63,728 bases of DNA, filler included, from Octopus bimaculoides (GCF_001194135.2; 7 parts of 7 records of this genome joined end to end with filler, not necessarily neighbours in it), one strand, 5' to 3'; shown: positions 32,234-52,623, numbered from the whole stretch's first letter. Notes: generated from the sequence alone by a model not told the origin. Translations and numbers: made by a program.

Positions 32234-33610
32234 TGTATGATGCATGTGTATGAACATCTATGCTTCATGGCAGTGAAACATGGGCCGTGACTGCTGAGGA
32301 CTTGCGTAGGCTCGCAAGGAATGAAGCCAGTATGCTCCTTTGGATGTGTAATGTCAGTGTGCATACTAGACAGAGTGTAGTACCTAGAGAGAAAAATTGA
32401 ACCTAAGAAGCACCAGTTGTGGTGTGCAAGAGAGACGATTGCACTGGTATNNNNNNNNNNGCCTCTCACTCAGAGTAAAAGGCAGACTGTATGATGCATG
32501 TGTATGAACATCTATGCTTCATGGCAGTGAAACATGGGCCGTGACTGCTGAGGACTTGCGTAGGCTCGCAAGGAATGAAGCCAGTATGCTCCTTTGGATG
32601 TGTAATGTCAGTGTGCATACTAGACAGAGTGTAGTACCTAGAGAGAAAAATTGAACCTAAGAAGCACCAGTTGTGGTGTGCAAGAGAGACGATTGCACTG
32701 GTATGGTCGTGTGGCAAGAATGGATGAGGATAGCTGTGTGAAAAAGTGCCACAGCCTAGCAGTTGAGGGAACCTGTGGAAGAGGTAGGCCCAGGAAGACT
32801 TGGAATGAGGTGGTGAGGCATGACCTGCAAACATTGGGTCTCACCAAGGCCATGACTTCCGACCAAGACTTTTGGAAATATGCTGTGCATGAGAAGACCC
32901 GGCAAGGCAAGAGAGAGCATAATTTGTGACCCTTGCCAGAAGTGTAGCCAGCTCACTAATTTGTATCTTTACTTCATTGGACACTTGCGAAGAGCTGTTG
33001 AGGCAAGTGAATTTGGAATTTGAAATCTGAAATCGAACCGAATCCGACGACTGGCACCCATGCCAACATCTCCTTCATTGGACACTAAACTCTGCTTGCA
33101 AAGACCTGTTGGGGCAAGTGAAATTGGAATCGTAATTGAACCATATTCGATGACTGGCACCTGTGCCAGTGGAGCATTAACAGTGCTGTCCGAGCGTGTT
33201 CATTGCCAGAGCAGCTGTCTGGCTTCCGTGCTAGTGGCCTGTAAATAGCACCATTTGAGCATAATCGTTACCAGCATTGCCTTCTAGCACTCGTGCTGGT
33301 GGTACGTTAGAAAATCATTCGAGCGAGGTCGTTGCCAGTGCCGTGGACTGGCTCCTGTGTAGGTGGCACGTAAAAAACACCTTTTTGAGCATGGCCGTTG
33401 CCAGGACCGTGTGACTGGCCCTCGTGCCGGCGGCACGTAGAAGCACCCACTACAATCTTGGAGTGGTTGGCGTTAGGAAGGGCATCCAGCTGTAGAAATT
33501 CTACCAGATCAGATTGGAGCCTGGTGCAGCCTTCTGGCTTGCCAGTCCTCAGTCAAATCGTCCAACCCATGCTAGCATGGAAAGCAGACGTTAAACGATG
33601 ATGATGATAA
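32234..33610 (+). mobile_element. RTE LINE 3' end plus tail; 32234-32450 duplicates 32488-32704
   Basis: SETWAV...RRLHWYGRVARM...GRGRPRKTW, followed by the repeated tail and (GAT)n. Confidence 0.9.
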
Positions 33611-34069
33611 TGATGGTGATATATACATACATGTTATTATCGAAAAGTTACAATAAGTGCTCAACACTGCATTGGTGGATAAATGTTCTTTATTCATGGG
33701 TTAATGAAATTACCATAGGTTTCGACCCCATTGTTATTAATAATAAAGATGTGCTATATTCGTTCTTCGTTTTCTAACTTGCACCATGTATGTGTGTGTG
33801 TAGCCTAGTGTTTAAGGTGTGGCACACACGATCATGAGCTCGTAATTTCGATTCCCAAAACGGCGTTGTGTTGAGTTTTTTGAGTCCGTCTCAAGGTGGA
33901 GAATGTTGGCCAAGCCAGTATGGTGTGGTATCATCCGAGAGCTGAAAGAATAAAAAGGATGCGCATTGTGATCAGCAGTGTGTAACAACACCTCATAGTT
34001 TTATTTTGTATATACATATATGTATGCAGGCAGGCAGGCAGGCAGGCATGCATGCATGTTTGTATGTAT

Positions 34070-34325
34070 TTATTTATTTGATCGTAATTTCTTATTTCTT
34101 TATTGCCCACAAGAGGCTAAACATAGAGGAGACTAACAAGGATAGACAAATGGATTAAGTCGATTACATCGACCCCAGGACGAAACTGGTACTTAATTTA
34201 TCGACCCCGAAAGGATGAAAGGCAAAGTCAACCTCGGCGGAATTTGATCTCAGAACGTAACGGCAGATGAAATACCGCTAAGCATTTCGCCCGGCATGCT
34301 AACGTTTCTGCCAGCTCGCCGCCTT
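34070..34325 (-). mobile_element. tRNA-derived SINE (second family), full length, with target duplication; tandem partial copies at 56935-57255 and a degenerate copy at 29169-29370
   Basis: The minus strand has B-box-like GAGATCAAATTCC and the core CTTTGCCTTTCATCCTTTCGGGGTCGATAAATTAAGTACCAG. tgatcgtaatt flanks both sides. Confidence 0.85.
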
Positions 34326-34743
34326 ATGATCGTAATTCATGTATAATTGTAAATATTATGTTATTTGCAGCATTCAGTTTTCCTCACTGGTTTCTGTAGC
34401 ATTAAGTCATGTTTGGGATCAATCTAATCTTTGTTTCTGTGTATGGTAAGACGAGACAGTCACAATCGGAATCTATCAACCTGCCAGAGACCACCCAGTT
34501 TCTATGACATAAATTTACTGTTTTAAAGTGACCTAAATTATAATCTACCGTCAAAATTCTTTGCTAATTTGTTCCAGACACCAACTTAACAATGAGAAAG
34601 TTATTTTATTAAATTTTTCATTATCTTAAAAATTAATTAAAACAAAGGCAGCATATGTTTACAGAAATATAGAAAGAAATGGGTTAAACCCGCAACTACA
34701 ATCCAGCGCATATAGCAGGTTTATTATGACTGTAAGGTAGCAT

Positions 34744-34975
34744 TCAATCCCCCACTAAAAGTAAAGGACGAGACATTCCTAGGAATACTTCTAGACATCG
34801 AAAGAAATCTGACCAACCTGTTAGAGGCGGTGCATAGACTGCTAGGAGTTGAAAAGTGCACTCATCGCTGCCGTCAACATTCAGGACAATCAGTCTACCC
34901 TCCGGGTCTGCGAATATCGTCTTTACTTCAAGATCCAGACTCTTGAGATAAAGTACCGCAGTGCCGTATTGGGGC
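34744..34975 (-). mobile_element. APE endonuclease fragment of an L1/Tx1-like LINE
   Basis: GTAVL...EGRLIVLNV...LLAVYAP...LLLVGD*NA, a GDxNA motif with a stop. It is divergent from the RTE copies. Confidence 0.75.
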
Positions 34976-36291
34976 AGACGGATTTTAGTGTGTGCTGCAA
35001 TGTTGGTGTGATGTGGTAAATTTTGATGCGTTCTGGTGCACGTGTGGTTGCTCGTTTTAATGTCGTTTTCTGTAATGCTTGCCTTCGATTTCATCGATTT
35101 TGTGTTGTAAGTGTTTATAGCTGTGAGCATGGTTTTCATGGTGTTGGTGTTGTTTGTATTAGAGTTGGAAATGTCTTTGGGAGTTGTGTATCTCCCTGTT
35201 TTGTTGGTGTTTGCTTTTGGTCTTTTTTTGCTCCTCTTCCTCCTTCCTTTTCTGGCTATTTGCCATTCCTCACTACTTTCGTCTTCCAATGATAGTTCTG
35301 AGGAATCGGAAGGGGATAATGGCATGTTGTAAGCGTCTGTGTGTGTTTCTGTAAGTGGTTGTGTTGTTGTTTCCGTTGGTGTTGGTTATTTGGGTAAGGT
35401 GTATGCAATATAGGGGAGGGGGAATCAATTTTTGCATCTTCTTATGTTTTTCCTGTATTTTCCCTTCTTGGTGTTTTTCCAGGAGTTGTTTTGTTGTTGA
35501 TTGTTGGTGTTGTTTTTATTGTCTTTTGTGTTGAAGGTGGCGTGGGTAGCAAGGGGATTTTTTTCCAGGGTTTGGTATTGGTCGTTGTTGTTGTTTTTTA
35601 GATAGTTTAACCTATCTAATACAAGCCAAGGTTACCAAATTCACTGTTCAAAATACTTTCAAAGGTGGGCTAGTAATAATAAGTTCTACTAAGGAATTTT
35701 TATATAAATAGCATGAGACATTTTGGTTTTCTCCTCTCTTAAATTCCAGCCTTCCTTTAGTATTCCTGTTGTTTTCGATTGATGCATAGATATATGTTTA
35801 TATGTATGTATACTGTAAAGTGTTAATATGTATGTATAATATAATATATATATATTATAAAAATATGTTAGTGTTCTTTAATTTTTGAACGGTTTTGCTG
35901 CCATTTGTTTATGTAGCCTGATTTCTTTATCCATTAGTTTCTACTAAGACAGAGACACGAGTAAAATTAATAATAGACAAATGAAAATAAAACTTTGGAA
36001 ACAACCTAAAGGAAGATAATTGAAAAATACTTGAAAGTGAACGTGAGATCGTAATCACATAAAGTAAAGTAAATATAACAAATAATCCAGAATCCTTGTC
36101 CGGTATCAGATCGATCCCAAAATCTAATTAGTTCGTGTCAGTCAAGAGGCCAAATATTTTGAAAGTTTCATCTGAATTCATCCAACGGATCTTGAGATAT
36201 CTTGTCCACAGACAAACGAAGAAACACAACTTAAAACAATACCTCAACAACTGAAACCAATAAAAAATAATTAAAGAATACTAATATTTAC

Positions 36292-36380
36292 CACAGTAAT
36301 TCTTCATCATTGTATCATCAGCCTCCTTCAAGTCTTTGCAATCAGTATTCTCAAAACAATTCAGATATTTGGGATGGTAC
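36292..36380 (-). CDS. Cysteine-rich secreted protein, copy L, exon 5 (domain 2, second half)
   Basis: ttcttttctccag|G TAC CAT...TAC TGT G|gtaaat. The 89-nt exon enters in phase 2 and exits in phase 1, giving YHPKYLNCFENTDCKDLKEADDTMMKNYC. Confidence 0.85.
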
Positions 36381-37069
36381 CTGGAGAAAAGAACAAAATA
36401 GTAATAAATTTCTATAGGTGGAGGTATGGCTGTGTGGGAAGAAGTTTGCTTCCCAACCACATGGTTCGAAATTCAGTCTAATGTGCCACTGCATGGTACA
36501 TTGGTCAAGTGCCTTCTACCATAGCCGCAGGCTGACCAAAACCTTGTAAGTGGATTTGGAAGACAGAAGCTGAAAGAAGCCTGTTGTATAAATGTGTGTG
36601 AGTGTGTGTGTGTGTGTGTGTGCATTTCAGTCTGTGTTTGTCCCCCACTATTGCTTGACAACCAGTGTCGGTGTGTTTATGTCCCTGTAACTTAGCAGTT
36701 CAGCAAGGAAAGCCTGATAGAATAAGTACCAGGCTTAAAAATACAATTACTGGGGTTGATTCATTCAACTAAAAGTTCTTCAAGGCCGTCCACCAGCATG
36801 GCCGGTCTAACGAGTGAAAGATAAAAGATATATATTATTTGCACCATATTTTGTAGCATACAAGTTGAATATTTCAGACCAAAATTTAAAACCAAAAAAG
36901 TAAGTCAATGTGTATTCCAAGACAACTTTGGAGGACCAAACATTTCATGTGAAACAGAGCAGGATTTTAAAAGATAGTGATGAAGTTTGATTGCTTACAC
37001 TATATACTATGTCAACTTGTATGCCAGAGAATATGGCATGTATTCCATATTTCCAGTGGTACAGCACTT

Positions 37070-37560
37070 CAAAAGCCATGACAAAACTGCAGCTCAATCA
37101 AGAGCATGCTCATTGTTGTTTTTTAAACATCTGTGGTATTCTTTGCCCAGGGCCAGACCATCAATCAAGTGTTCTATTGTAATATTTTGAAGCATTTGAG
37201 GAAGAATAATCGGTGAAAACAACCTGATCTGTAGAGCATGAAGAATTGGATTCTTCATCACAACAATGCAACCTGTCACCGAGCTCTCCTTACATAGGAG
37301 TTTCTTGCCACAAACAACATGGTATCACTTCCACACCTGCCATATTCACCAAATTTAGCACCTGCGGACTTTCATCTTTCCCCAAGATGAAAATGCAGCT
37401 CAAAGGTCACCATTTTAACACCGTTGTCAAGATCCAGAGTGAATCACTTACAGAAAATTACTACCAAGCTGGATTTGAAAAATGGCAGTGATGCTGAGAC
37501 CTGTATATTGGTTGCGCAAGGCGTTGATGTTAGAACTTAGGTAGACAGGTTATTTTTTAT
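37070..37560 (+). mobile_element. Mariner transposase C-terminal fragment (second family)
   Basis: WILHHNNATCH...LPHLPYSPNLAPAD..FPKMKMQLKGHHF. Confidence 0.8.
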
Positions 37561-37695
37561 TAAATATAACTAGTCCAGGAACTGTGTGATACCATCTCTC
37601 ACAGAACAGTTAATAAAATTTAGTAATCTTGTATGTTACAAAGGAGAAGAGGAAACTTATTATTTTAGGAGTGTCTATTCATTTAAGACAAAGTA

Positions 37696-38739
37696 TCAGG
37701 TTATCCCATAAGTTCTGTCCGATTTTACCATTTTTAAAATTGAATGAAATTTAATAGTATTTTAAAGTGTCCAATGGAATTAAAAATTATTTTTATGCAT
37801 TTGTGTACATTTATACTAATTGAATATTATTTTACAGAATAATAGAATTAAAATTTCTTTGATTACAACACTTTCTAACATGGAAGTATCCAAAGAGCAT
37901 TTGAGGCACATAATGCTTTTTGAGTACAAAAAAGGAAACTCTGCAGCCAAAGCGACTTGAAACATACACTCAGTTTCCAGGAAAGAATGCTTGAATGAAA
38001 GAACTTGCAGAAGATGGGCTGCAAGTTTCAGAAGATGGGTTGCAAATTTCAAAAGTGGAGATTTCAGCCTTGAAGATGAAGATCAAACAGGACATCCTGT
38101 TCAGTGTGAGGATAAGCTCCTTGAGGCATTACTTGGAGAATATCCTCCATTATCAGTTGAAGAATTAGCAATAAAGCTTAGTTCAAACCATACAACTGTT
38201 CATCGTCGTCTTCATCAACTTGGAAAGGTTCCTAAACTTGAAAAATGGGTGCCTCATGAATTGTCCAAAAGCAACTGCCAATCCTGAGTTGACATCTGCT
38301 CTTCTCTCTATTCTCACGAATGAAAAATGGAGCTTTAGTGAATCAAAAAGCAGTGATGTTTCATCAGGACAGTGTGCAACTCCACACTGCAAAGATCAAA
38401 TCACAGAAGATCGAAGAGCTTGGTTGGGAAAAAATAACTCATCCACCTTATTCTCCCAACCTTGCTCCTTTAGACTACCATTTGTTTCGTAGTTTACAGA
38501 ATCATTTAGGGGACATAACTTTTGCAAGCCAGGAGGAGATCGAAACTGACATTTCAGAGTTCTTTGCTATGAAAGCAAAAGAGTTATACATTGATGGGAT
38601 TAAAAAGCTTGTAAATAGATGGAAGGAAGTCATAAATAATCAGAGAAAGTACATTGATGATTAAATTTCAATTAAATATAACATTTGATCTCTTGTATTC
38701 TTTATTCAAAATTCAGACAGAACTTATGGCATGACCTGA
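37696..38739 (+). mobile_element. Mariner element with both TIRs and TA duplication, defective
   Basis: TA|tcaggttatcccataagttctgtc...gacagaacttatggcatgacctga|TA. Translation: MEVSKEHLRHIMLFEYKKG...WVPHEL...HPPYSPNLAPLDYHLF. It has stops and a deletion removing the first catalytic Asp region. Confidence 0.95.
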
Positions 38740-39026
38740 TACATTACAACCATGACCCTCCCATCTATTTTTCAGACCCTGCTACCCCATGATTACAGCA
38801 CTCAGTCTGTGCTCTATTCATTGAGACCTTTATTTCACTGGCCCACTGAAAGAACTTCAATACCAGCAAGATCTCTATCAAATCACAATCTACTGCCTTA
38901 AAAGGGAAGGATACATGAAACGTGATGTTTTCAAGAAAAACATTAAAAGATTGCTGCTGTCTCAGATTGAAACAGTACAATGTGTTATGTGGCACTTTCA
39001 AACTGAGTAATTTTAAATAAACTTAC

Positions 39027-39111
39027 GAGCAGTAAGAACCATTATTCTTTATCATATCACTGTATACTTCAAGTTTGCATGCTACCACCTTAGTGAGTTC
39101 ACATTTACCCT
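39027..39111 (-). CDS. Cysteine-rich secreted protein, copy L, exon 4 (domain 2, first half)
   Basis: ttttatttttccag|AG GGT AAA TGT...TAC TGC TC|gtaagt. The 85-nt exon runs from phase 1 to phase 2, giving GKCELTKVVACKLEVYSDMIKNNGSYC. Confidence 0.85.
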
Positions 39112-39303
39112 CTGGAAAAATAAAATTAATTTAAGATCTCATGTTACAATTTAAACATAAACATAGTATTTTATAATATGATATTCTTTAGTCACTCTCA
39201 AAAGTCCCTTTAATGAAAAATTGTGGCTTTTTTTGTTTTGCTTTGTTTTTGCTTGACTTTGTTTTTTTCCTTTTGTTTTTACATTTAGATCTTTTGTTTA
39301 GAT

Positions 39304-39566
39304 CAATAGTTCTCCACTGGGGTACATATGACCCTTTGGTGGGGTCCACATAAGATTTTGTAGCTAAAATTTACATGCAATAAAGTGGTTATACTTTTAC
39401 AGTACACAAAATATTTTAACAATTTTTTTTTTAATACAGTTCCAAATAATATTTAATTATGAAAATATTGAAGGATTTTTTAAAACATTGAATGCTTAGG
39501 AGGGTCCATGCAAGTAAAATAGGGATCAAGGGGGCCCATTGGTAAAAAAATAATTGAGAAACCCTG
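39304..39566. mobile_element. hAT-type MITE with 8-bp target duplication
   Basis: GTTTAGAT|caatagttctcc...tgagaaaccctg|GTTTAGAT. Confidence 0.75.
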
Positions 39567-40979
39567 GTTTAGATGAAGTATTAAAATATATTTTAAACTT
39601 TCACTAAAAGTAATTCAATTTAATTCGATATTTTAACCATTTACATTCCACAATACAGTATTCATTTATGTGTATTTAGGCATGAGAAAGAAGCATGCCA
39701 AGAACTGATCAGAACATTATATATNNNNNNNNNNNNNNNNNNNNNNNNNNNNNNNNNNNNNNNNNNNNNNNNNNNNNNNNNNNNNNNNNNNNNNNNNNNN
39801 NNNNNNNNNNNNNNNNNNNNNNNNNNNNNNNNNNNNNNNNNNNNNNNNNNNNNNNNNNNNNNNNNNNNNNNNNNNNNNNNNNNNNNNNNNNNNNNNNNNN
39901 NNNNNNNNNNNNNNNNNNNNNNNNNNNNNNNNNNNNNNNNNNNNNNNNNNNNNNNNNNNNNNNNNNNNNNNNNNNNNNNNNNNNNNNNNNNNNNNNNNNN
40001 NNNNNNNNNNNNNNNNNNNNNNNNNNNNNNNNNNNNNNNNNNNNNNNNNNNNNNNNNNNNNNNNNNNNNNNNNNNNNNNNNNNNNNNNNNNNNNNNNNNN
40101 NNNNNNNNNNNNNNNNNNNNNNNNNNNNNNNNNNNNNNNNNNNNNNNNNNNNNNNNNNNNNNNNNNNNNNNNNNNNNNNNNNNNNNNNNNNNNNNNNNNN
40201 NNNNNNNNNNNNNNNNNNNNNNNNNNNNNNNNNNNNNNNNNNNNNNNNNNNNNNNNNNNNNNNNNNNNNNNNNNNNNNNNNNNNNNNNNNNNNNNNNNNN
40301 NNNNNNNCATCGACTTGGAAAATTCAATTGCCCTTTTGAAAAATTGATTCCAGTACCCCTAAAAAGATCGAGATGTCTCACTTAAAATAAAGATTCAGCT
40401 TGAAATAATGAGTGCTTTCAAAAGGCTCTCGGCTTCATAAAAAAGAAAAGAATAGGTAAGTATAACACTAAACCCCACTTTAACACAAAAGCCTGCTTTT
40501 TCATGCCCATTGCTGAGGGGGTGCACTGGATGGCACTAACTTCTTACTATTAAATGTTGCACCCTAAGATTTAGAAAATTCAGTTTACAAAAAATCTTCC
40601 TGCAATACAAATTAGTCCCCACCCAGAATATTCTGAAGCACCCACAAGCACCAAAGTCTGGCAAGAGGCCAGTGCTCCTTACTACTTGTAGAAATTGAAC
40701 ACATAGGTGAATCTTATTGTCCATAGCAGAATGAATGGAGACAGTGACACACAAGAGCCATAATGTAATCTGAGTAACCACATTTGCTAGATTAAACACG
40801 GTCTCTTACTTCATATGAGGGTCTATCAGCTACCATGATTTAGCTTTATTTTTATTAATGTCAAGCAAAATAAATATTCAATATATTAAAAGCTAATCAT
40901 ATTCAATCGAGAAAAAATTTTGAATACACATTATCTTACTCCACCTCTACCCTGCCAAAATCTTTTATTCCTTACTTAC

Positions 40980-41071
40980 TACAGGCATCGTGTGCAGCCA
41001 TAAATAGACCAGCATATCTTTGTAATTTGCAGTGAGACAGGATAAGGCACTTTTCAATATCATGGTAGACC
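40980..41071 (-). CDS. Cysteine-rich secreted protein, copy L, exon 3 (domain 1, second half)
   Basis: ttttctgtcttgtttcag|G GTC TAC...GCC TGT A|gtaagt. The 92-nt exon runs from phase 2 to phase 1, giving VYHDIEKCLILSHCKLQRYAGLFMAAHDAC. Confidence 0.85.
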
Positions 41072-41179
41072 CTGAAACAAGACAGAAAAAAACAATATAA
41101 CATACATACATACATGTGTGTGTGTGTGTGTGTGTTAACTGAACCTGATAAGCTAGCTTTCTGTAAGATGGCCATGAAT

Positions 41180-41690
41180 CTTTAAGTTGCATAGGGCTGT
41201 TCAGATTTGCTTATCAGTTGCTTGACCTTAACCATTTGAGTATGTCCCTGAATGGCTGATGATTTGTGCATCTCTGATCATGAGCAAGAGTAGTGAAGGA
41301 GCATCATAGCCATGTGTTGAGAGGAATTCTTTGGGGTTTGTATAATTCACCCCTGGAAACATGGGTGTTTCGTTCATCGATAGAGCCAATTATTGTTGGT
41401 TCCTTGGGAACAGTATCAGAAGGCATCAAGAAGAATATAAAATTAATTGGAATAGAGTGCCCAGTAGAAATGTTACAAAAAGTTTGCCTCCTTGGCACAG
41501 CCAGAATAATCAGGAAAGAATTAGATTGCTGAAAAGAACAAATAGCATGGTACTGTAGGCTGCAATTAGTAAGCCTGTTATGCATGCAAGACTCCAGGAG
41601 CTCCAACAAAACATGTGATAAAGAGAAAATAATAATGATAATAATATTAATGATAATAATAATAATAATAATAATGATAATAATAATCCT
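41180..41690 (+). mobile_element. 3' end of an RLE-type (R4/Dong-like) non-LTR element with (TAA)n tail; paralogous copy at 49070-49345 (-)
   Basis: PIIVGSLGTV...LQKVCLLGTARIIRK resembles the C-terminus of restriction-like-endonuclease non-LTR ORFs. A TAA-rich tail follows. Confidence 0.65.
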
Positions 41691-41759
41691 TTCTTTATTA
41701 GCCACTAGAACCCACAAAAATAGAAAGTGAGCTCTTCTGTCGTAAGAAGATGCAAGACC

Positions 41760-42340
41760 TCATACCACTTGAACAACTTGAAATAAACTCCAGGAACTTG
41801 AGGTATCAAATTGATGCCACACCCAACATATAGTCTGGACCTAGCTCCCTCAGATTATTACTTGTACCAACTCATGGCTCACTTCCAGCTCTCACAATGC
41901 TTTATCAACAATGAGGTTCTTTACTCTACTATTCTCATCCACATGCATCACATGGCTACACCAGGGCAGTCTTCTCTCTTGCACGCCACATCTAATTCCA
42001 CTTATAACCACTTTTTCTCTCAAGAAGCTTTGACTTTGTCATTCGTGCACACTAATGTTGCACATCCTGGAAAGCATATTAGCTTCATTTCTTTCAAGCC
42101 TTCACATGTCCTCTGCAGCTACAGCCCTGTTTCACTGCCATGTAGAATGGCTGTTCACACATAGGCATCATACTATCTGCTTTTCAGTCTGAGGAAGTGG
42201 CTCTTTTTTTCCAACAAAGGTAGAAGTTATCTGAACTTTACTCAGCCTATTCCTATTCTAGCAGCTAAGATCTCAGAACATCCACCTCCACTGCTGACTT
42301 GGTCATCTAGGTAATGGAAGTTGTCCCCTATACTAATTTT
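41760..42340. mobile_element. Mariner scrap (+) joined to an RTE 3' fragment (-)
   Basis: MPHPTYSLDLAPSDYYL, followed by sequence homologous to positions 60-430. Confidence 0.7.
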
Positions 42341-42866
42341 GGTTCAAATTGAAAGTGTGAAACTATTTTCACTTTCTAATGAAACCTCATCATTGTAGAG
42401 CAGTGTATTTCAAATAACTATAGCTGGTTGTTGAGATAACATAGAAAATATGTAGATGAAAATAAAGTTTATGTGGTAGGCAGAAGATTACTGAATCTCT
42501 TAATACCCTATGTGTCATAATCAGCAACTTAGTTTTCGAATGCATATGGAACATACATGCACACACACACACACACACACACATTCTCTTTTATACATAT
42601 ATATATCTTCATACAACCATATATTTATATATGCTTATATATATTGCATGCATTCTGTAAATACAGACTGTAAATAGAACACTGGAAATATTAAAACTTT
42701 TCTTAAATCCAACAAGTAATTTTTATGTTTTTCATGACTGAATTCCATCGATGGAATTTTGCATCTCTAGTCACAAATCAGCCCCTTCTTTATAAAAGGA
42801 ATTCAAAGAATTGTATAAGAGAGGGAACATAAATAATACCTGCGAATGCTTTTAAGATATTCTTAC

Positions 42867-42969
42867 CTACATATCTTCTCTTTACTATCCTTGGCTTCTG
42901 ACAAGTGTCTAAATTTCGACAGGCATTTCCCTTCTTGTCTACGAGAACACAAGGTGGATGCTTGGGCAG
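42867..42969 (-). CDS. Cysteine-rich secreted protein, copy L, exon 2 (signal cleavage site and domain 1, first half)
   Basis: ttcctttgaacactaatgattctgtag|CT GCC CAA...ATA TGT AG|gtaaga. The 103-nt exon runs from phase 1 to phase 2, giving AQASTLCSRRQEGKCLSKFRHLSEAKDSKEKIC. Confidence 0.8.
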
Positions 42970-43426
42970 CTACAGAATCATTAGTGTTCAAAGGAAGAAA
43001 ATTCAATAAGTGGTTGAAGAATTTGATTCAAATTGGTAGGTAATATATAAAGACAACAAAAAAGAAATCACATCAAAATTCCAATTGCAAGCTGTATTTG
43101 ATTCTTCTGTTTCACCATTGTAAATATGGTATTCTGCACATGAATATGTAGTTAAGTTTGGAAATATATTGTTATGTTATATTATATTATATAAGGCGCA
43201 GGCATGGCTGTGTGGTAAGAAGTTTACTTCCCAACCACATGGTTCCAGGTTCAGTCCCACTGTTTGGCACTTTGAGCAAGTTTCCTATAGTATATCCTCA
43301 GGCCAATTAAAACTTTATGAGTGGATTTGGCAGACAGAAACTGAAAGAAGCCTATCATATATACATAATTAAGATTCAGTTGATGTAAGTACTTTAATCG
43401 AGGCACCAAGCCAGATTGGTATAGTC

Positions 43427-43859
43427 TGTAGGGAAGTGGGCATACACCATTCTGCGTATCCCAATTCTTCAAGGAAGAAAACAGAACGCAGACTCTAAAC
43501 TAAAACAGCATAACAAATATTTATTACAGTAGAATTCTGCTCACACTGGGAGGGAATTCGATAGAATGTCGCCTTTTGGTTAGATGAGCCGCCATCAGTG
43601 AAGCTGCGTGGTTTGAAGTCTTTCCTCCTCTCTAGTTAACTATGTGGACTCATTGTAGAGTTGATGGAGAGCTGCTGTCGAGACGTCTAGCTTCCACGAA
43701 GTTCAGCAAGCAAAAGAGGCAGAGAGATGTGGGAACGCTTGAATGTTGGATGACCACGCATGCACATGAGGGACTTCCTGCATTCATTCCGGAAGACTAG
43801 TCCCTGCGCATGCGTGGATAAACTCTCCAAAATGGCGACTGGTATCAAATGCCACTATA
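43427..43859 (-). mobile_element. 3' LTR of the Ty3/Gypsy element
   Basis: On the minus strand the PPT GAGGGGGAGCC (43861-43871) precedes TATAG...CTACA termini, with an internal AATAAA near 43520. Confidence 0.7.
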
Positions 43860-44222
43860 TGGCTCCCCCTCGAGTGCAGAAGCACGAAAATGGAAAAATT
43901 GGAGTGGCGCCTGAGGCAAGATGTCTATCGAAACCACCCACAAGATGTGGCACAAATATATATAAAGAAAAATCGAAGAAATGATGTACAATAGTGAAAT
44001 ACATGCATGCAATGTACAAAAAGAATTGAGGAAAAAGGTATGCAAGGAATTGGGCAGTAAGTGCCAACTAGTGGAAAACTGAAATAGACAATGACAAAAC
44101 AACTGTGATGACAACTGTCCAGGAAAACTGGAATCACGTGATGTAAAAGTCTGATTTCTTTTTTTGAAAAGAAAAATGTTCAATAAAAAAACATTGAAAT
44201 TGTCCAATGAAGTTCAATAAAG

Positions 44223-46870
44223 TTAAATGTAAATAGTGTTTGCCAGTTTCTTTGGCCAGTGTACAGTTCGGCCAGACCTAGTAACATAGTATTTGTTCAA
44301 GGCAGGTTGCGACGACGAAGGTGGTGTTGTCCAAGGTGTATGTGTTGGTGATGGTGTTGGCAAAGGTGTGTGTAATGGGTCAAATGCGAGCATAACAGTG
44401 GTGTCAACGAAAGATGTAGGACCTTCAGCATAAGCTTTCTCTGTACGACCATTAACGTCAATTTTGAATACTTTCAGTGTGCAGGAAAGCACACGAAAGG
44501 GTCCTTTATAAGAAGAAACAAGAGGTCCTTTGGCAGAATCATCTCGAACAAAAACATGCGTCCAAGAGTCAAGATCTGATGGCACTTTAGAAGGTGGAGG
44601 TTGGTGTCGGGGACCCATAGGAGGAAGGGTAGAAGAATAACTGCGTAGTCGAGCGGCATAAGACTCTGGATTGAGAGACTGTGACTTGTCTGGCACCAAC
44701 ATCGCACCAGGCAATGCCAGTGTGGTACCATACAACAGCTCGGCGGAAGAAAAACCTAGGTCTGCTTCAACCGCAGTCCGAGATCCAAGCAGGACAATAG
44801 GAAGAAATTCAGTCCACGGCTGTGGATTCGGCGAGGCACGCAACGCGGCCTTAAGTTGCCTGTGGAATCGCTCCACCATCCCATTAGAAGCGGGATGGTA
44901 ACTAGTGGTGCGTATATGATTCACTCCCAGGATTCGTGATAACTCACGAAATAAAGTAGCTTCAAATTGTCGACCACGATCTGTGGTTAGGCTGGACGGT
45001 ACACCGAACCGAGAAATCCAGCCAGACACGAAGGCTTTTGCGACAGATCCAGCAGAAATGTCTGCTATAGGAATGGCTTCTGGCCAACGGGAGAACCGAT
45101 CGACACAAGTTAAAATATACGAGAAACCGCAACTCACAGGCCATGGTCCAACCAGATCAAGGTGGACATGGCGAAAACGGGCCTCAGGAGAAGAAAACTG
45201 TCCAAGTGGAGCACGAACGTGTCTATGGACTTTAACACGCTGGCACTTCATGCAAGAGCGTGCCCAAGAGGTAATCGATCGCCGCATATTGGGCCAGAAG
45301 AACCGAGCAGTAACAAGCTTTACGGCGGCAGAGATGCTCGGATGTGACAATGAATGAAGGGCATCAAAAACAGAACGTTGATGGTTCTCAGGTACTAACG
45401 GCCTTGGAGAACCGGTGGAGATGTCACATAGAATAGAGCCTTCAGCTGAAGGGAGCGGAAGATAGGCAAACTTACAAGAAATAAACTTGGGTGAAGTTAA
45501 ATCCAACTTCGATAAAGGTGGTTGATCCTGCGAAATAGCAATTAAGTCAATTGCTGCAGGAGAGGAAATGGAATTGACAGGGAGCCTAGAGAGAGCATCA
45601 GCTGGGACGTTTTCCATCGCTGGCACATGTCGAATGTCACCTGTAAACTGAGAAATATAGTCCAGGTGACGGAAAGCACGAGGGGAGAGTTTGTCTGTTT
45701 TAGAAGATAGGGCAAACGTAAGGGGCTTGTGATCAGTATAAATCACAAACTCCCGTCCCTCGAACTGGTGCTGAAAATGACGAACCGACAGAGAGATCGC
45801 TAATAGTTCACGATCAAAAGTACTATATCTGCGTTCGGCAGGCTGCAATTGGCAAGAAAAGAAAGCCAAAGGTTTCGTTTGATTATCTACGGTGTAGTGC
45901 AAAACAGAACCAACCGCAGAATCTGATGCATCCACAGATAAAGAAAGCGGAGCATCAGGAGCCGGATGTTTCCTGTTTCACTGACTCAAAGGCAGACAAT
46001 GCCACAGCTGAAAAAGTAAGATGGGCATCTTTTTTAGAATTGCCCTTCTGCAGCTACGTTAAAGGATCAGCTTGTCCGCACACCGGTTTATAAAGCGTCG
46101 ATGAAAATTAACCATACACAAAAAATGGCGCAGCTGACGCAAAGAAGTTGGAGGCGCGATGCGCTGAATGGCATCGAACTTAGCAGGAAGAAGTTTGATC
46201 CCGTTAGAATCAATATAGTGACCCAGGAATTCCAGGGAGGACTGCCTGAAAACACACTTATCATGGTTTATCTTTACATTATAGGCGCAGAGTCGCTGAA
46301 AAAGTTGCGACAAATGGTGGCGATGATTCTCTTGTGTATCACTAGCGATAAGTAAATCATCAACAGAAGCGAAGACAAAATCAAGCCCACGAACAACTTC
46401 ATCTATAAATCTTTGGAAATCTTTTGTAGCATTCCGCAGACCGAAACCCACAAAAAGAAATTCAAAACAGCCAAAAGGAGTAGTAATAGCTGTTTTTGGA
46501 ACGTCCTCCGGATTAACTGGAATCTGATGATATTCACGAATCAGATCAATTTTAGAAAAAATGGTACAACCATGTAGATTAGCTGAAAAATCCTGCAGAT
46601 TCCTAATGAGATAGCGGTCAGGCACTGTTACAGTATTAAGACGCCGATAGGCCCCCACCGGGCGAAAATCAGAATTCCCTTTTCGCGCCAAATGAAGGGG
46701 AGATGCCCATGAGCTGGTGGAGTGGAGTATCAGGCCGAGTTGAAGCATGTGTTCAACTCGGCCCTAGCCGTCTTGAGACAGTCAGATGCCAGACGCCGTG
46801 GGCGCGAAAAAACAGGCGACCCAATAGTTGCGATAAAATGGAGGGTGGAATGAATGGGCTTTGCCAGCCT
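44223..46870 (-). mobile_element. Ty3/Gypsy pol (RT, RNase H, integrase); 5'-truncated and defective
   Basis: RT motifs WASPLH, FSKIDL..EYHQI and SVDD (the YxDD tyrosine is lost). RNase H motifs [15 protein letters not shown] and TDHKPL. Integrase motifs HHCC, HLDLVGP, TDRGRQF and GMVERFH. There is a frameshift between RT and RH, and no gag or 5' LTR. Confidence 0.97.
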
Positions 46871-46895
46871 AAAAGTTATATCCACCAGCTGCATG

Positions 46896-47215
46896 TATGT
46901 GATCGTAATTTCTATATAATTGTAAATATTATGTTATTTGCAGTATTAAGTTTTTCTCACCAGTTTCTGTAGCATTAAGTCATGTTTGGGATCAATGTAA
47001 TCTTTGTTTCTCTATATGGTAAGACGAGACGATCACAATCAGAATCTATCAACCTGCCAGGTTCTATGACATAAATTTACTGTTTTAAAGTTATCTAAAT
47101 TATAATCTACCGTCAAAATTCTATGCTAATTTGTTCCAGACACCAGCTTAATAATGAGAAGGTTATTTTATTAAATTTTTCATTATCTTAAAAATTTATT
47201 GAAACAAAGGTAGCA
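46896..47215 (+). repeat. Direct duplicate of 34329-34690 (exon-like 75-bp segment plus MITE)
   Basis: Colinear, highly similar sequence from tgatcgtaatt to gaaacaaagg. Confidence 0.9.
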
Positions 47216-47938
47216 TTCCAGCCATGATCATCATCTTTTTTCTAGTATATCTAGGAATACTTTATGGAGAGCATATTCATCCATTTTCAAGGCAGTGAAA
47301 CTGAAAGGCAGGTCGAATTATATGTAAACGAGAGACGTGCAGCAAACTATTACACTCTCATATACAATCGATTACTGCATGCAGGGAGAGTGTAGTATGG
47401 AACATAAAATATATGGAAGCATTATATAACTGGAAGAGATTTGTCAGCCGTACTTAGTCAGGCTGCTGAGGATTGACTGCAGGGGACGAATGAGCAATCG
47501 CTCCTGGGATGCAGGTCTAAAGGGGTGCAACATTGCCTCTTGCTGGCTTATCTATCAGTTGAGATGAGAAAGCCAAAATTGCCGTTGCCTCCTAGCTATG
47601 CGACTGTTTGTCATAAATCTATTCAATTACACCTAGATTAAATCGAAAGAATACTGAACAATCCCCTAAAGGACGAACCGTTCGCACCTTGTCACAGGCC
47701 GTACACTGTGACACCGATCAAGGCAGCGTTAATGAACGACTCCGTCACCCAGCACTATATCACACATATATATTTATTTATCTATGTAAGCATCGGCAGC
47801 TGATAAAATTAAGTAGTAGACTGATATATATATATCGGAGTTGATACGATCGAATAAAACCTTCCAATGTGGGGTTCCAGCATGACCGCAGTCCAATGAA
47901 TGAAATCATTAAAGGAGTAAAATAATGAATGAACTTAC

Positions 47939-47990
47939 CCGCTACAAAAACGGCAACAACTATGAATAGTTTCAGCATACTGAAGTACAT
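47939..47990 (-). CDS. Cysteine-rich secreted protein, copy L, exon 1 (signal peptide)
   Basis: ATG TAC TTC...GTA GCG G|gtaagt gives MYFSMLKLFIVVAVFVA. The phase 1 donor matches the phase 1 acceptor of exon 2, producing ...FVAAAQA-STLC. Linkage across the Gypsy-containing intron is inferred. Confidence 0.7.
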
Positions 47991-48768
47991 AAGTTTTTCA
48001 CAAGGCAAAAGGAATTCAATCTCTCTTTGAAGAGAAGAAAGTAAGTGATGGTGTCATACTTAGATGATCGTATATATATATATATAGAGAGAGAGAGATT
48101 GATGAAAATTGTTTGTTCAATAAATGCATTTTAAAATAAAACCCCAAACAAACTTCACTAAATATTTGTCTGAGGATTAAATTTTATTGATTGTAAATAT
48201 TTACGAATTGCTAATAGGTTTTTCTGTTTGCAATACGTCGCTCAGAGAAACACAATAAGTGAAGTCTTTTCTCTTTCCTTTTTTAAATATTGTGTCTCGA
48301 ATATTATTTAGTATCAACTGATTGGTTGATATTTACACAAGTTTCAGTTTATAAATCAATAGTATACGTNNNNNNNNNNNNNNNNNNNNNNNNNNNNNNN
48401 NNNNNNNNNNNNNNNNNNNNNNNNNNNNNNNNNNNNNNNNNNNNNNNNNNNNNNNNNNNNNNNNNNNNNAGCACTCACAGGTATTATTTATGTTCCCTTT
48501 CTTATACAATTCTTTGAATCCCTTTTATAAAGAAGAGGCTGATGTGTGACTAGAGATGCAAAATTCCATCGATGGAATTCAGTCATGAAAAACATAAAAA
48601 TTTCGTGTTGGATTTAAGAGAAGTTTTAATATTTCTAGTGTTCTATTTACAGTGTGTATTTACAGAATGCATGCAATATATATAAGCATATATGAATATA
48701 TGTTTGTATGAATATATAAATATCTATAAAAGAGAGTTTGTGTGTGTATGTGTGTGTGTGTGTATGTT

Positions 48769-48802
<34 letters not shown>

Positions 48803-49430
48803 TGCACATATTTGTTCCTTATGCATTCGAAAACTAAGTTGCTGATTTTGATATATGGGGTATTAAATGATTCAGTAATCTTCTGCCTACCAAATAAACT
48901 TTATTTTCATCTACATATTTTCTATGTTATCTGAACAACCAGCTATAATTATTTGAAAAACCTTGCTCTACAACGATGAGGTTTCATTAGAAAGTGAAAA
49001 TAGTTTCACACTTTCAATTTGAACCAAAACTATGTAGGGGACTACTTCCATTACTTAGATGTCCAAGTAAGTTATTTGATCTTTTCTGCAATCTAATACT
49101 TTCCAGATTATTCTATCCGTGCCAAGGAGGCAAACTTTTTGTAACAGTTCTACTGGGCACTCTATTCCAATTTCCCTTAAATTCTTCTTGATGCCTTCTG
49201 ATACTGTTCCCAAGGAACCAACAATAATTGGCACTATCTTCACCTTCATTTTCTATAGCCAATCTATTTTGTATTTATCTATCTGTCCACCTTCAAGAAA
49301 TCTGAACAGCCCTATGCAACTTAAAGTTTCATGGCCATCTTAGAGAAAGCTAGCTTATCGGGTTCCGTTAATACACACACACACACACATGTATGTATGT
49401 TATATTGTTTTTTTTTCTGTCTTGTTTAAG

Positions 49431-49522
49431 GGTCTACTTTGATATTGCAAAGTGTCTTGTCCTGTCTCACTGCAAATTACGAAGATATGGTGGTCTATTT
49501 AAGGCCACAAAGGAAGCCTGTG
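49431..49522 (+). CDS. Cysteine-rich protein, copy R, exon equivalent to L exon 3
   Basis: ttttctgtcttgtttaag|G GTC TAC...GCC TGT G|gtaagt gives VYFDIAKCLVLSHCKLRRYGGLFKATKEAC. Confidence 0.85.
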
Positions 49523-50037
49523 GTAAGTAAGGAATAAAAGAGTTTGGCAGGGTGGGTGTGGGGTCAGATTATGTGTATTGCAAAGTTTTTGCCGATTGAA
49601 TATGATTAGCTTTTAATATATTGAGTATTTATTTTGCTTGACATTAATAAAAATAAAGTTAAATCATGGTGACTGATAGACCCTCATATGAAGCAAGAGG
49701 CCGTGTTTAATCTTGCAAATGTGGTTACACAGATTACATTATGGCTCTTGTGTGTCACTGTCTCCATTCATTCTGCTATGGACAATGAGATTCACCTATG
49801 TGTTCAATTTCTACAAGTAGTAAGGAGCACTGGCCTCTTGCCAGACTTTGGTGCCTGGGGGTGCTTCAGAATATTCCCAGTGGGGACTAATTTGTATTGC
49901 AGGAAGATTTTTGTAAACTGAATTTTCTAAATCTAGTGCCATCCAGTACACCACATTAGCAATGGGCATGAGAAAGCAGGCTTTTGTTTTAAAGCGGGGT
50001 TTAGTGTTATACTTACCTATTCTTTTCTGTTTTTCAG

Positions 50038-50122
50038 AGGGTAAATGTGAACTCACTAAGGTGGTAGCATGCAAACTTGAAGTACACAGTGATATGATAA
50101 AGAATAATGGTTCTTACTGCTC
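50038..50122 (+). CDS. Cysteine-rich protein, copy R, exon equivalent to L exon 4
   Basis: tcttttctgtttttcag|AG GGT...TGC TC|gtaagt gives GKCELTKVVACKLEVHSDMIKNNGSYC. Confidence 0.85.
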
Positions 50123-50935
50123 GTAAGTTTATTTAAAATTACTCAGTTTGATGAAGCCTGTCATCTGCTTCTTATATAAGCTTTTATTCACCAAAGCCTT
50201 ACAACTACCTGCTAATTATTAACCTACGTTTTCTTTATCCTCCTCCTCTCCACATCCTTCATCTCTCACTCAGACTCCTTGTCTCTTCTTCTGCCATGGT
50301 AATAAGCCAGTAAGGGAACCTTTATGTGGTCTTTTGACCTTCAAGTAATAGAAGCGAAATATCCTTAAAAATCACATTCTACTGCTTTTATAAAAGGCAA
50401 TGGCACATTGGATATTGTGATTCTAGATATATCCTTTTTGAGAAAATGCTGGAATAATCGTCAATAGAACAGCTTTGGATGCTGGGTACTTGATTAAAGT
50501 TGTATATACAAGCAGACAGATCATATATTGATCTGAACATGTTTTAACATAGCTTCCTAAAACTAATATACATGGATACTTGTGGTAGTAACACTCTGAT
50601 AACAGGATTATTAAATAAATTGAAATTTCAGTTCAGCAGACTAAAAAGGTGTTTGCCATCACAATATGGCTGAAGGGAAAGTGCCACATAACACATCGTA
50701 CTCTTTCAATCTGAGACAGCAGAAATCTTTTAATGTTTTTCTTGAGAACATCACATTTCATGTATCCTTCCTATTTAAGGCAGTAGATTGTGATTTGATA
50801 GAGATCTTGCTGGTATTGAAGTTCTTTCAGTGGGCCAGTGAAATAAAGGTCTCAATGAATAGAGCACAGACTGAGTGCTATATTTATGGGGTAACAGGGT
50901 CTGAAAAATAGATGGGAGGGTCATGGTTGTAATGT

Positions 50936-51208
50936 ATCAGGTTATCCCATAAGTTCTGTCTGAATTTTGAATAAAGAATACAAGAGATCAAATGTTATAT
51001 TTAATTGAAATTTAATCATCAATGTACTTCCCCTGATTATCTATGACTTCCTTCCATCTATTTACAAGCTTTTTAATCCCATCAACGTAAAACTCTCTTG
51101 CTTTCAAAGCGAAGAACTCTGAAATGACAGTTTCAACCTTCTCCTGGCTTGCGAAAATTATGTCCTTCCAAATGATTCTGTAAACTATGAAACAATCTAT
51201 CTTTTAAA
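50936..51208 (-). mobile_element. 3' remnant of the same mariner insertion as 37696-38739
   Basis: Reverse-complement match to about 38490-38741, in the same flanking context. Confidence 0.9.
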
Positions 51209-51792
51209 ATCCTGTTCTAATTCACATGAAATGTTTGGTCCTCCAAAGTTGTCTTGGAATATACATTGACTTACTTTTTTGGTTTTAAATTTTGGTCTGA
51301 AATATTCAACTTGTATGCTACAAAATATGGTATAAATAATATCTTTTATCTTTCACTTGTTTCACTCATTAGACCGGCCATGCTGGGGCACGGCCTTGAA
51401 AAACCTTTAGTTGAATGAATCAACCCCAGTAATTGTATTTTTAAGCCTGGTACTTATTGTATCAGTCTTTTCTTGCTGAACTGCAAAGTTACAGGGACAT
51501 AAACACACCAACACTGGTTGTCAAGCAGTAGTGGGGGATAAACACAGACTCAAACACACACACACAGATATATACACACATTTATACAACAGGCTTCTTT
51601 CAGCTTCTGTCTACCAAATCCACTTACAAGGCTTTGGTCAACCTGAGGCTATGGTAGAAGGCACTTGCCCAATGTGCCATGCAGTGGCACAATGGTCTGA
51701 ACCTCGAACCATGTGGTTGGGAAGCAAACTTCTTCCCACACAGCCATACCTGCACCTATAGAAATTTATAACTATTTTGTTCTTTTCTCCAG

Positions 51793-51881
51793 GTACCATC
51801 CGAAATATCGTAAATGTTTTGATAACACTGACTGCAAAGGCTTGATGGATGCTCAGGATAAATTGATGGAAAAATACTGTG
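51793..51881 (+). CDS. Cysteine-rich protein, copy R, exon equivalent to L exon 5
   Basis: ttcttttctccag|G TAC CAT...TAC TGT G|gtaaat gives YHPKYRKCFDNTDCKGLMDAQDKLMEKYC. Confidence 0.85.
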
Positions 51882-52623
51882 GTAAATATTAGTATTCTTT
51901 AATTATTTTTTATTGGTTTCAATTGTTGGGCTGAGGTTTTGATTTAAGTTGTGTTTCTTTGTTTGTCCGTGGACAAGATATCTCAAGAACCGCTGGATGA
52001 ATTCAGATGAAACTTTCAGGATGTTTGGCCTCTTGACTGACATGAACTAATTAGATTTTGGGATCGATCTGATACCGGACAAGGATTCTGGATTATTTGT
52101 TATATTTACTTTACTTTACATGATTACAATCTTATGTTCACTTTCAAGTCTTTCTCAATTGTCTCCCTTTAGGTTGTTTCCAAAGTTTTATTTTCATTTG
52201 TCTATTATTAATTTTACTCGTGTCTCTATCTTAGCAGAAACTAATGGATAAAGAAATCAAACTACATAAACAAATGGCAACAAAACCGTTCAGAATTTAA
52301 ATAACACTTTTATAATATATATATTATATATTATACATACATATTAACACTTTACAGTATACATACATACATCATCATCATCATCGTTTAACGTCCGCTT
52401 TCCATGCTAGCATGGGTTGGACAATTTGACTGAGGACTGGTGAAACCGGATGGCATCACCAGGCTCCAATCTAATTTGGCAGAGTTTCTACAGCTGGATG
52501 CCCTTCCTAACGCCAACCACTCANNNNNNNNNNNNNNNNNNNNNNNNNNNNNNNNNNNNNNNNNNNNTTAATTAATTAANNNNNNNNNNNNNNNNNNNNN
52601 NNNNNNNNNNNNNNNNNNNNNNN

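Follow-up and report, generated by a model that had tools for sequence, protein, structure and literature searches.

Insect odorant-binding proteins (OBPs; Pfam PBP_GOBP) are secreted, disulfide-stapled proteins of ~14 kDa with six helices that are encoded in fast-evolving clusters, and the classic spacing of their six cysteines is C1-x25-30-C2-x3-C3-x36-42-C4-x8-14-C5-x8-C6. Saposin-like proteins are secreted and often antimicrobial or lipid-binding, and their helical three-disulfide domains can occur in tandem. The attractin family of Aplysia comprises small, secreted, helical molluscan signalling proteins with six cysteines in a single domain of ~58 residues, and a three-helix bundle with three disulfides makes up the extracellular domain of the membrane protein RAMP1. 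Here we describe a locus of Octopus bimaculoides that encodes a protein with some of these features. It lies in a window of 63,728 nucleotides, filler included (the whole stretch of DNA that was analysed, seven parts of GCF_001194135.2 joined end to end). The piece of interest covers window positions 32234-52523, has 38% G+C and contains runs of N at 32451-32460, 39725-40307 and 48370-48469. Two copies of the gene, termed L and R, are found in this piece, and a third one, termed C, is located outside of it. As a whole, the locus is best explained (with a probability of about 0.7) as a cluster of at least three young paralogous O. bimaculoides genes for a secreted, two-domain, helical protein with 12 cysteines, presumably an extracellular ligand or effector.

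With the OBPs the octopus protein would share mass, predicted secretion, six predicted helices, presumed disulfide stapling and its place in a fast-evolving cluster. This is an analogy in the way of working, as the octopus protein has 12 cysteines in two repeated units instead of six, their spacing differs from the classic pattern, and neither a PBP_GOBP match in Pfam at E ≤ 10 nor an OBP in the Foldseek PDB lists was found. Likewise, the saposin models SapB_1 and SapB_2 gave no Pfam or PDB-sequence match and no significant Foldseek match, and the cysteine spacing of saposins is unlike that of the octopus protein. The Pfam scan (E ≤ 10) returned no match to the attractin family, which also has a different cysteine spacing. 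The sole disulfide-stapled three-helix domain in the Foldseek lists was that of RAMP1, at chance level (E = 4-9, TM-score 0.21-0.24) and with an unrelated sequence in a membrane-protein ectodomain. Known toxin families (ShKT, Kunitz, CAP, PLA2, ICK and others) yielded no Pfam, PDB-sequence or Foldseek match.

The closest described sequences are near-identical proteins that stem from this same chromosomal locus. Just two protein clusters among 5.8 billion matched the mature peptide, both of them from O. bimaculoides. One is XP_014768658.1, "uncharacterized protein LOC106868059 [Octopus bimaculoides]". The other represents LOC106880807, with XP_052825450.1, XP_014786418.1, UniProt A0A0L8FVY1 and the 52-aa fragment A0A0L8H3W4. 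No family was named by a Pfam scan of the spliced protein (E ≤ 10), and a profile search of PDB sequences gave no match. Foldseek searches of the full-length and mature AlphaFold models against the PDB, and of the mature model against BFVD, returned nothing below E = 1.8, with generic helical repeats as the top matches. Searched exhaustively with HMMER, 1.84 billion representative proteins yielded the family's own cluster only, plus P0005, which we rejected as a homologue. This 511-aa sequence consists of nine copies of a ~55-residue unit, a translated tandem repeat or satellite, and it reached E = 1.4e-4 only via a repeated chance match to ICRVYHDIEKCLILSHC, a 20-residue motif present nine times. 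Literature searches on the accessions, on Octo-SAP and other sperm attractants, on Sepia egg-case proteins and on novel peptides of the posterior salivary gland revealed no corresponding family; the SepECPs from Sepia egg cases, with at least 50 cysteines and CC motifs, are unrelated. A first-pass annotation, made from the sequence alone, had recognised no family either, and the Pfam, PDB-sequence, Foldseek and HMMER searches agree with it. As far as annotated proteins go, the family appears to be taxonomically restricted, i.e. an orphan.

Exon structure, product and predicted fold of copy L

The gene of copy L is composed of five minus-strand exons (Table 1), all of which are preceded by AG and followed by GTAAG or GTAAA, have compatible phases and add up to 421 nt. 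They are the exons put forward in the first-pass annotation, and borders, phases and translation coincide with the peptide given there. The spliced product is 100% identical to XP_014768658.1 (LOC106868059, 143 aa) over the 140 residues derived from that annotation, i.e. 100% of the query. Exon 1, with the donor GTAAGT, corresponds to residues 1-17 at 100%, and the coding sequence (CDS) of the RefSeq model starts at 47990. Together with the acceptor at 33941, which belongs to the terminal exon in RefSeq, all splice sites of the gene model (9/9) are canonical. Copy L is complete and equals LOC106868059. The locus had been regarded as unannotated, which is not the case: LOC106868059 as well as LOC106880807 are present in RefSeq. 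A TATATA run is located ~75 nt upstream of the start codon, and we infer that the 5′ flank of L is its promoter.

The amino terminus shows the features of a signal peptide of 21 residues when read by eye. MYFSMLK, LFIVVAVFVAAA and QA/S make up the n-, h- and c-regions, and the A-Q-A/S site fits the -3/-1 rule. In the AlphaFold model, residues 3-20 form a separate helix of low confidence. For the mature protein we computed a length of ~122 residues, a mass of 14.0 kDa, an isoelectric point of 8.6-9.0, 12 cysteines and one conserved N-G-S sequon. It can be divided into two units, encoded by exons 2 and 3 and by exons 4 and 5, respectively, each of which is flanked by phase-1 introns (1-1) and interrupted, one residue past Cys3, by a phase-2 intron. 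Successive cysteines are spaced 7-17-8-5-15 in domain 1 and 7-15-8-5-14 in domain 2, giving the common pattern C-x7-C-x15/17-C-x8-C-x5-C-x14/15-C. With random placement of the inner cysteines, such an agreement has p ~1e-3, and requiring three or more exact gaps lowers this to 8e-5. Both the cysteine framework and the exon structure thereby point to an internally duplicated two-domain protein. In agreement with the initial proposal, the locus harbours a eukaryotic gene with spliced exons, and its cysteine-rich product has two domains and is probably secreted. AlphaFold2 predicts six helices, three per unit (pLDDT, the predicted local confidence score, 78; pTM, the predicted TM-score, 0.61). 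According to this model, each domain would consist of three helices, presumably held by three disulfides.

The carboxy terminus can be drawn in two ways. No terminal exon had been found for either copy in the first-pass annotation. For L, RefSeq places a putative one at 33941-33931, which would fill that lack; it sits in a segment without counterpart in R or C. Alternatively, read-through of the exon-5 donor (TGTG/gtaaatattag) would end the protein with GKY-stop. This option is kept in all three copies, and it is the way in which RefSeq ends LOC106880807. Aligning L, R and C beyond exon 5 did not decide between the two endings.

Copies, gaps and gene models

The region of 35.8-42.85 kb had been described as an inverted copy of 48.47-52.36 kb. 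In line with this description, 18 inverted-repeat pairs and colinear BLAST matches connect 35801-42850 with 48470-52369 at 89-97% identity, and an additional match connects 33461-33626 with 52357-52522. The L arm is longer than the R arm because of segments that occur only in L (36978-38481, 39126-40438 with the 583-N gap, 41545-42293 and 33627-35800); a segment of 525 bp (50152-50676) is exclusive to R. Since intron 3 of R is free of gaps and links exon 3 directly to exon 4 over 515 nt, the 583-N gap in L conceals no exon, and as splicing makes the frame independent of the gap, the frame is not affected.

Copy R bears the last three exons on the plus strand, as had been predicted. Their splice sites are intact, their frames are open and every cysteine is kept, and together they are 100% identical to residues 52-143 of XP_052825450.1. 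The locus is more than the gene pair that had been assumed, because a third copy is present upstream on the plus strand. Copy C lies ~24-36 kb to the left of the piece (10001-22278 of L002, the fetched locus of LOC106880807, in which the window coordinate equals the L002 coordinate minus 14389) and is without a gene model of its own. Its exons 1 (L002 10001-10052) and 2 (L002 12930-13032) are exons 1-2 of LOC106880807. An intact exon 5 with AG/GT borders is found at L002 22190-22278 and differs from R exon 5 at 3 of 89 nt. Exons 3 and 4 of C would fall in a 5.7-kb gap at L002 15581-21279. In non-coding DNA, C, L and R are pairwise 88-94% identical.

The RefSeq model LOC106880807 joins exons 1-2 of C to exons 3-5 of R. 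Its CDS spans 56 kb (L002 10001-66281) and encloses the entire L gene on the opposite strand. This model is probably chimeric, as a consequence of gaps in the assembly. The simplest reading is that there are three paralogous genes, two of which are broken by gaps, and that RefSeq stitched the 5′ half of C to the 3′ half of R.

The 100-N gap in the centre of the inverted duplication deserves particular attention, as the first exons of R had been placed there. Its flanks are not continuous with each other. The left one is the 5′ flank of L, which is homologous to that of C up to the last base before the Ns, and the right one begins 17 nt downstream of the expected donor of R exon 2. Exon 2 and these 17 nt would require 120 nt, more than the 100 Ns available, and by analogy with C, where exon 1 to exon 2 spans ~3 kb, R would need ~3 kb from exon 1 through exon 2. 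The 100 Ns are therefore a placeholder. It is therefore unproven that the first exons of R reside in this gap, the nominal size of which is too short. Also unproven are the completeness of R and the head-to-head orientation, which rests on the scaffold join.

An unlikely alternative is that R is a dead, 5′-truncated partial duplicate with exons 3-5 only, so that there would be no functional head-to-head pair but just L and possibly C. Exons 1-2 of R are indeed absent from the sequence, the nominal gap could not hold them, and RefSeq completed R only with exons 1-2 of C, ~50 kb away. However, the three exons have kept open frames, all cysteines and 6/6 splice sites despite 12% divergence. Moreover, the homology ends at a contig edge and not at a sequence breakpoint, and 100 Ns are the conventional placeholder for a gap of unknown size. 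It is improbable that LOC106880807 is right as drawn, i.e. one 56-kb gene whose intron 2 encloses a gene on the opposite strand. This model is the current RefSeq annotation, but C possesses its own intact exon 5, with exons 3-4 expected in the 5.7-kb gap, and intron 2 of C is paralogous to intron 2 of R (90-93%) rather than continuous with it.

A further possibility is a haplotig artefact, in which the two arms would be allelic versions of one gene that the assembly has placed next to each other in opposite orientations. The R arm starts exactly at the 100-N scaffold join, and the region is riddled with gaps and shows at least one clear artefact of assembly, namely the exact 217-bp duplicate at the 10-N gap. 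Nevertheless, the divergence between L and R amounts to 6.3% over 3007 aligned non-exonic positions and to 12% over exonic positions, and several kb-scale insertions are specific to one arm. The reported heterozygosity of O. bimaculoides is 0.08% (PMC7656900). Compared with this value, a divergence of 6-12% together with kb-scale indels makes a mis-assembly of alleles very unlikely. In addition, C is about equidistant from both arms and has its own exon 5. From their divergence, L, R and C are paralogues, not alleles. That the exons are a chance or non-functional prediction is hardly credible: although there are no homologues outside the locus, L has canonical splice sites and a start codon, its predicted signal peptide is of the textbook type, its 12 cysteines are regularly spaced, and frames, splice sites and cysteines are conserved in two further copies at ~10% divergence.

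Table 1. Positions of the gene copies, duplication arms, gaps and transposon remnant in the window
Feature	Position	Strand	Remarks
L 5′ flank (putative promoter)	47991..48369	-	reaches gap edge; ~95% identical to C 5′ flank
L exon 1	47939..47990	-	ATG and most of predicted signal peptide MYFSMLKLFIVVAVFVA; last four residues AAQA from exon 2
L exon 2	42867..42969	-	end of predicted signal peptide (AQA/S) and domain 1 Cys1-3; AG/GTAAG borders; 100% identical to RefSeq
L exon 3	40980..41071	-	domain 1 Cys4-6
L exon 4	39027..39111	-	domain 2 Cys1-3; conserved NGS sequon
L exon 5	36292..36380	-	domain 2 Cys4-6
Alternative L 3′ end	36281..36291	-	exon-5 donor read-through to ...C-G-K-Y-stop
RefSeq terminal coding exon of L (putative)	33931..33941	-	tttcag/CTCTCGGATGA, i.e. 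tttcag/CT CTC GGA TGA (A-L-G-stop); RefSeq CDS end 33931
R exon 3	49431..49522	+	AG/GTAAGT borders; open frame; cysteines kept
R exon 4	50038..50122	+	1 nt differs from L
R exon 5 and read-through	51793..51892	+	exon to 51881, then GKY-stop as in RefSeq
Left arm of inverted duplication	35801..42850		inverted-repeat and BLAST matches
Right arm of inverted duplication	48470..52522		begins exactly at gap edge; reaches piece end
583-N gap	39725..40307		in L intron 3, within L-only insertion 39126-40438; CDS unaffected
100-N scaffold gap	48370..48469		centre of inverted duplication; would hold R promoter and exons 1-2, if existing
LTR-retrotransposon pol remnant	44223..46748	-	L intron 1, same strand as gene

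Divergence of the copies and further features of the locus

The mature proteins of L and the C/R sequence differ at 28 of 119 aligned residues, but at none of the 12 cysteines (p = 0.03). The differences are clustered: they affect 6 of the first 10 residues, none of the 23 residues at positions 11-33, 10 of 30 in exon 3, one of 27 in exon 4 and 11 of 29 in exon 5. Identical runs reach up to 23 residues (permutation p = 0.03). Residues 11-33 and 64-90 of the mature protein make up two long segments that are fixed, and the changes are concentrated in the N-terminus, in the third helix of domain 1 and in the final two helices of domain 2. The ratio of nonsynonymous to synonymous divergence (dN/dS) amounts to 0.81 for exons 3-5 (L versus R) and to 1.26 for exons 1-2 (L versus C), each estimated from 51-88 codons. 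With a dN of 0.127 and a non-exonic divergence of 0.066, replacements exceed the non-exonic level ~1.9-fold (Fisher p = 0.004). The copies diverge mostly by amino-acid replacement, a pattern that fits diversifying change on a fixed disulfide scaffold.

Several mobile elements are located in and near copy L. Intron 1 contains the remnant of a long terminal repeat (LTR) retrotransposon, with open reading frames (ORFs) for reverse transcriptase (46059-46748) and for RNase H and integrase (44223-45935) and Pfam matches to RVT_1 (1e-23), RT_RNaseH (3e-23), Integrase_H2C2 (2e-14) and rve (9e-12). Copy C has a gap where L carries this insertion. A dispersed repeat of 328 bp, ~90% identical and in the same orientation, occurs at 34327-34654 and 46900-47216; one copy stands beside the pol remnant in intron 1, the other ~0.4 kb from the terminal exon of L. 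They might represent an LTR and a solo LTR; in that case the ALG-stop exon would be associated with a transposon. Remnants of mariner/Tc1-like transposases are present on the plus strand in intron 4 (37991-38664) and intron 2 (41811-42164) and explain in part why the L arm is the longer one. They have weak helix-turn-helix and DDE_3 matches, and an LAPSDYYLY motif can be seen by eye. Two ORFs at 34744-35325 (minus strand) and 32651-32929 (plus strand) have no Pfam match; by eye they resemble fragments of non-LTR retrotransposons, with an endonuclease-like N-terminus and an RLHWYGRVARM...GRPRKTW tail. An element resembling a short interspersed nuclear element (catcatcatcgtttaacgtccgctttccatgctagcatgggttgg...) lies at 52340-52523, where the homology of the R downstream region to L and C stops, and a related copy is found at 33461-33626 on the other arm.

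The piece is base for base identical, gaps included, to CM046607.1 of O. bimaculoides (GCA_001194135.2) at ~30.43-30.45 Mb, which bears out the presumed cephalopod origin, and the DNA of the locus is identical to CM046607.1 30434094-30468153. This chromosome-scale assembly retains the same Ns, so the gaps are not resolved there. At the left end of the piece, a 217-bp direct duplicate with 100% identity (32234-32450 and 32488-32704) surrounds the 10-N gap at 32451-32460; it has the appearance of an artefact in which two overlapping contigs were not merged. The right-hand neighbour of the cluster is a ubiquitin hydrolase gene (zf-UBP and UCH; L002 74718-76281, minus strand) that has no relation to the family. 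Neither Rfam nor tRNA scans gave a match in the piece, and tblastn of the protein against the whole piece revealed no domains or exons beyond the known ones.

Candidate roles and significance

Several points weigh against the proposal of a cluster of paralogous genes for a secreted two-domain effector. Orientation and completeness of R depend on the scaffold join across a gap of unspecified size. The 3′ end of the gene is ambiguous, as either the ALG-stop or the GKY-stop may be used. No residue-level similarity was found between the two domains (Smith-Waterman z = 0.1 versus shuffles; hhalign probability 0.3%), so it is cysteine spacing and exon structure that argue for the internal duplication, which would be old, or fast-evolving, relative to the gene duplications. 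The fold model was predicted from an alignment of 2-3 sequences, and its confidence is no more than moderate. All sequences in the protein clusters derive from annotation. Finally, with so few codons the dN/dS values are statistically compatible with relaxed constraint, and the pattern of changes could also reflect such relaxation combined with local gene conversion.

If the proposal of a paralogous effector cluster is correct, the product would be secreted and fold into two disulfide-stapled three-helix domains, and it would act outside the cell as a helical ligand or effector that binds a partner. The invariant segments might represent the scaffold or a contact shared by the paralogues. Specificity may reside in the hypervariable helices, whose surface would diversify from one paralogue to the next, as happens in proteins of venom or saliva, immunity, pheromone signalling and reproduction.

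Which role such a protein would play can be proposed only tentatively, and the functions suggested in the first-pass annotation (toxin, salivary, immune or reproductive protein) are guesses. It may be an exocrine effector against prey, predators or microbes, for instance in saliva or venom, in skin or sucker mucus, or as an antimicrobial. The protein is predicted to be secreted and disulfide-rich, it is basic and encoded in a duplicated cluster, and its dN lies above the neutral proxy with invariant cysteines. Extensive novel gene formation linked to venom has been reported for octopods (PMC7656900), which would be in keeping with this role. On the other hand, no similarity to any known toxin family was detected by Pfam, PDB-sequence or Foldseek searches, and the searches of the cephalopod salivary-gland literature revealed no counterpart. 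A possible though rather doubtful role, suggested by analogy with helical disulfide-rich pheromones and odorant-binding proteins, is that of a waterborne chemical signal, a reproductive protein or a carrier of small ligands. The protein is small, predicted to be all-helical, multi-disulfide and secreted, and its rapid divergence is restricted to the species; yet the Attractin, PBP_GOBP and saposin models of Pfam gave no match. Other roles share the remaining probability.

The most far-reaching version of the proposal, which we consider speculative and on balance unlikely, is an Octopus-restricted new fold of tandem three-helix, three-disulfide domains that arose recently, was amplified into a palindromic or tandem array and evolves under diversifying selection in the role of an effector of venom, mucus or chemical communication. 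If true, it would represent a new cephalopod toxin or pheromone scaffold. It is important to note that the novelty is modest. The genes are already listed in RefSeq as 'uncharacterized protein', and they form an ordinary, though fast-evolving, orphan family; invertebrate genomes commonly contain lineage-specific clusters that code for secreted cysteine-rich proteins. What is gained is a corrected annotation of the locus, with three copies instead of two, one RefSeq model that is probably chimeric, an ambiguous 3′ end and two gaps that would conceal exons. The analysis further adds evidence against an allele artefact and shows that invariant stretches of the protein alternate with hypervariable ones.

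Lineage-specific genes are considered a major source of cephalopod novelties, among them venom, suckers, skin and chemotactile sensing. An orphan family that diverges fast, lacks relatives in sequence or fold and has a presumably secreted, disulfide-rich product is a reasonable candidate for a role in such a novelty, and it could also supply a new stable helical scaffold.

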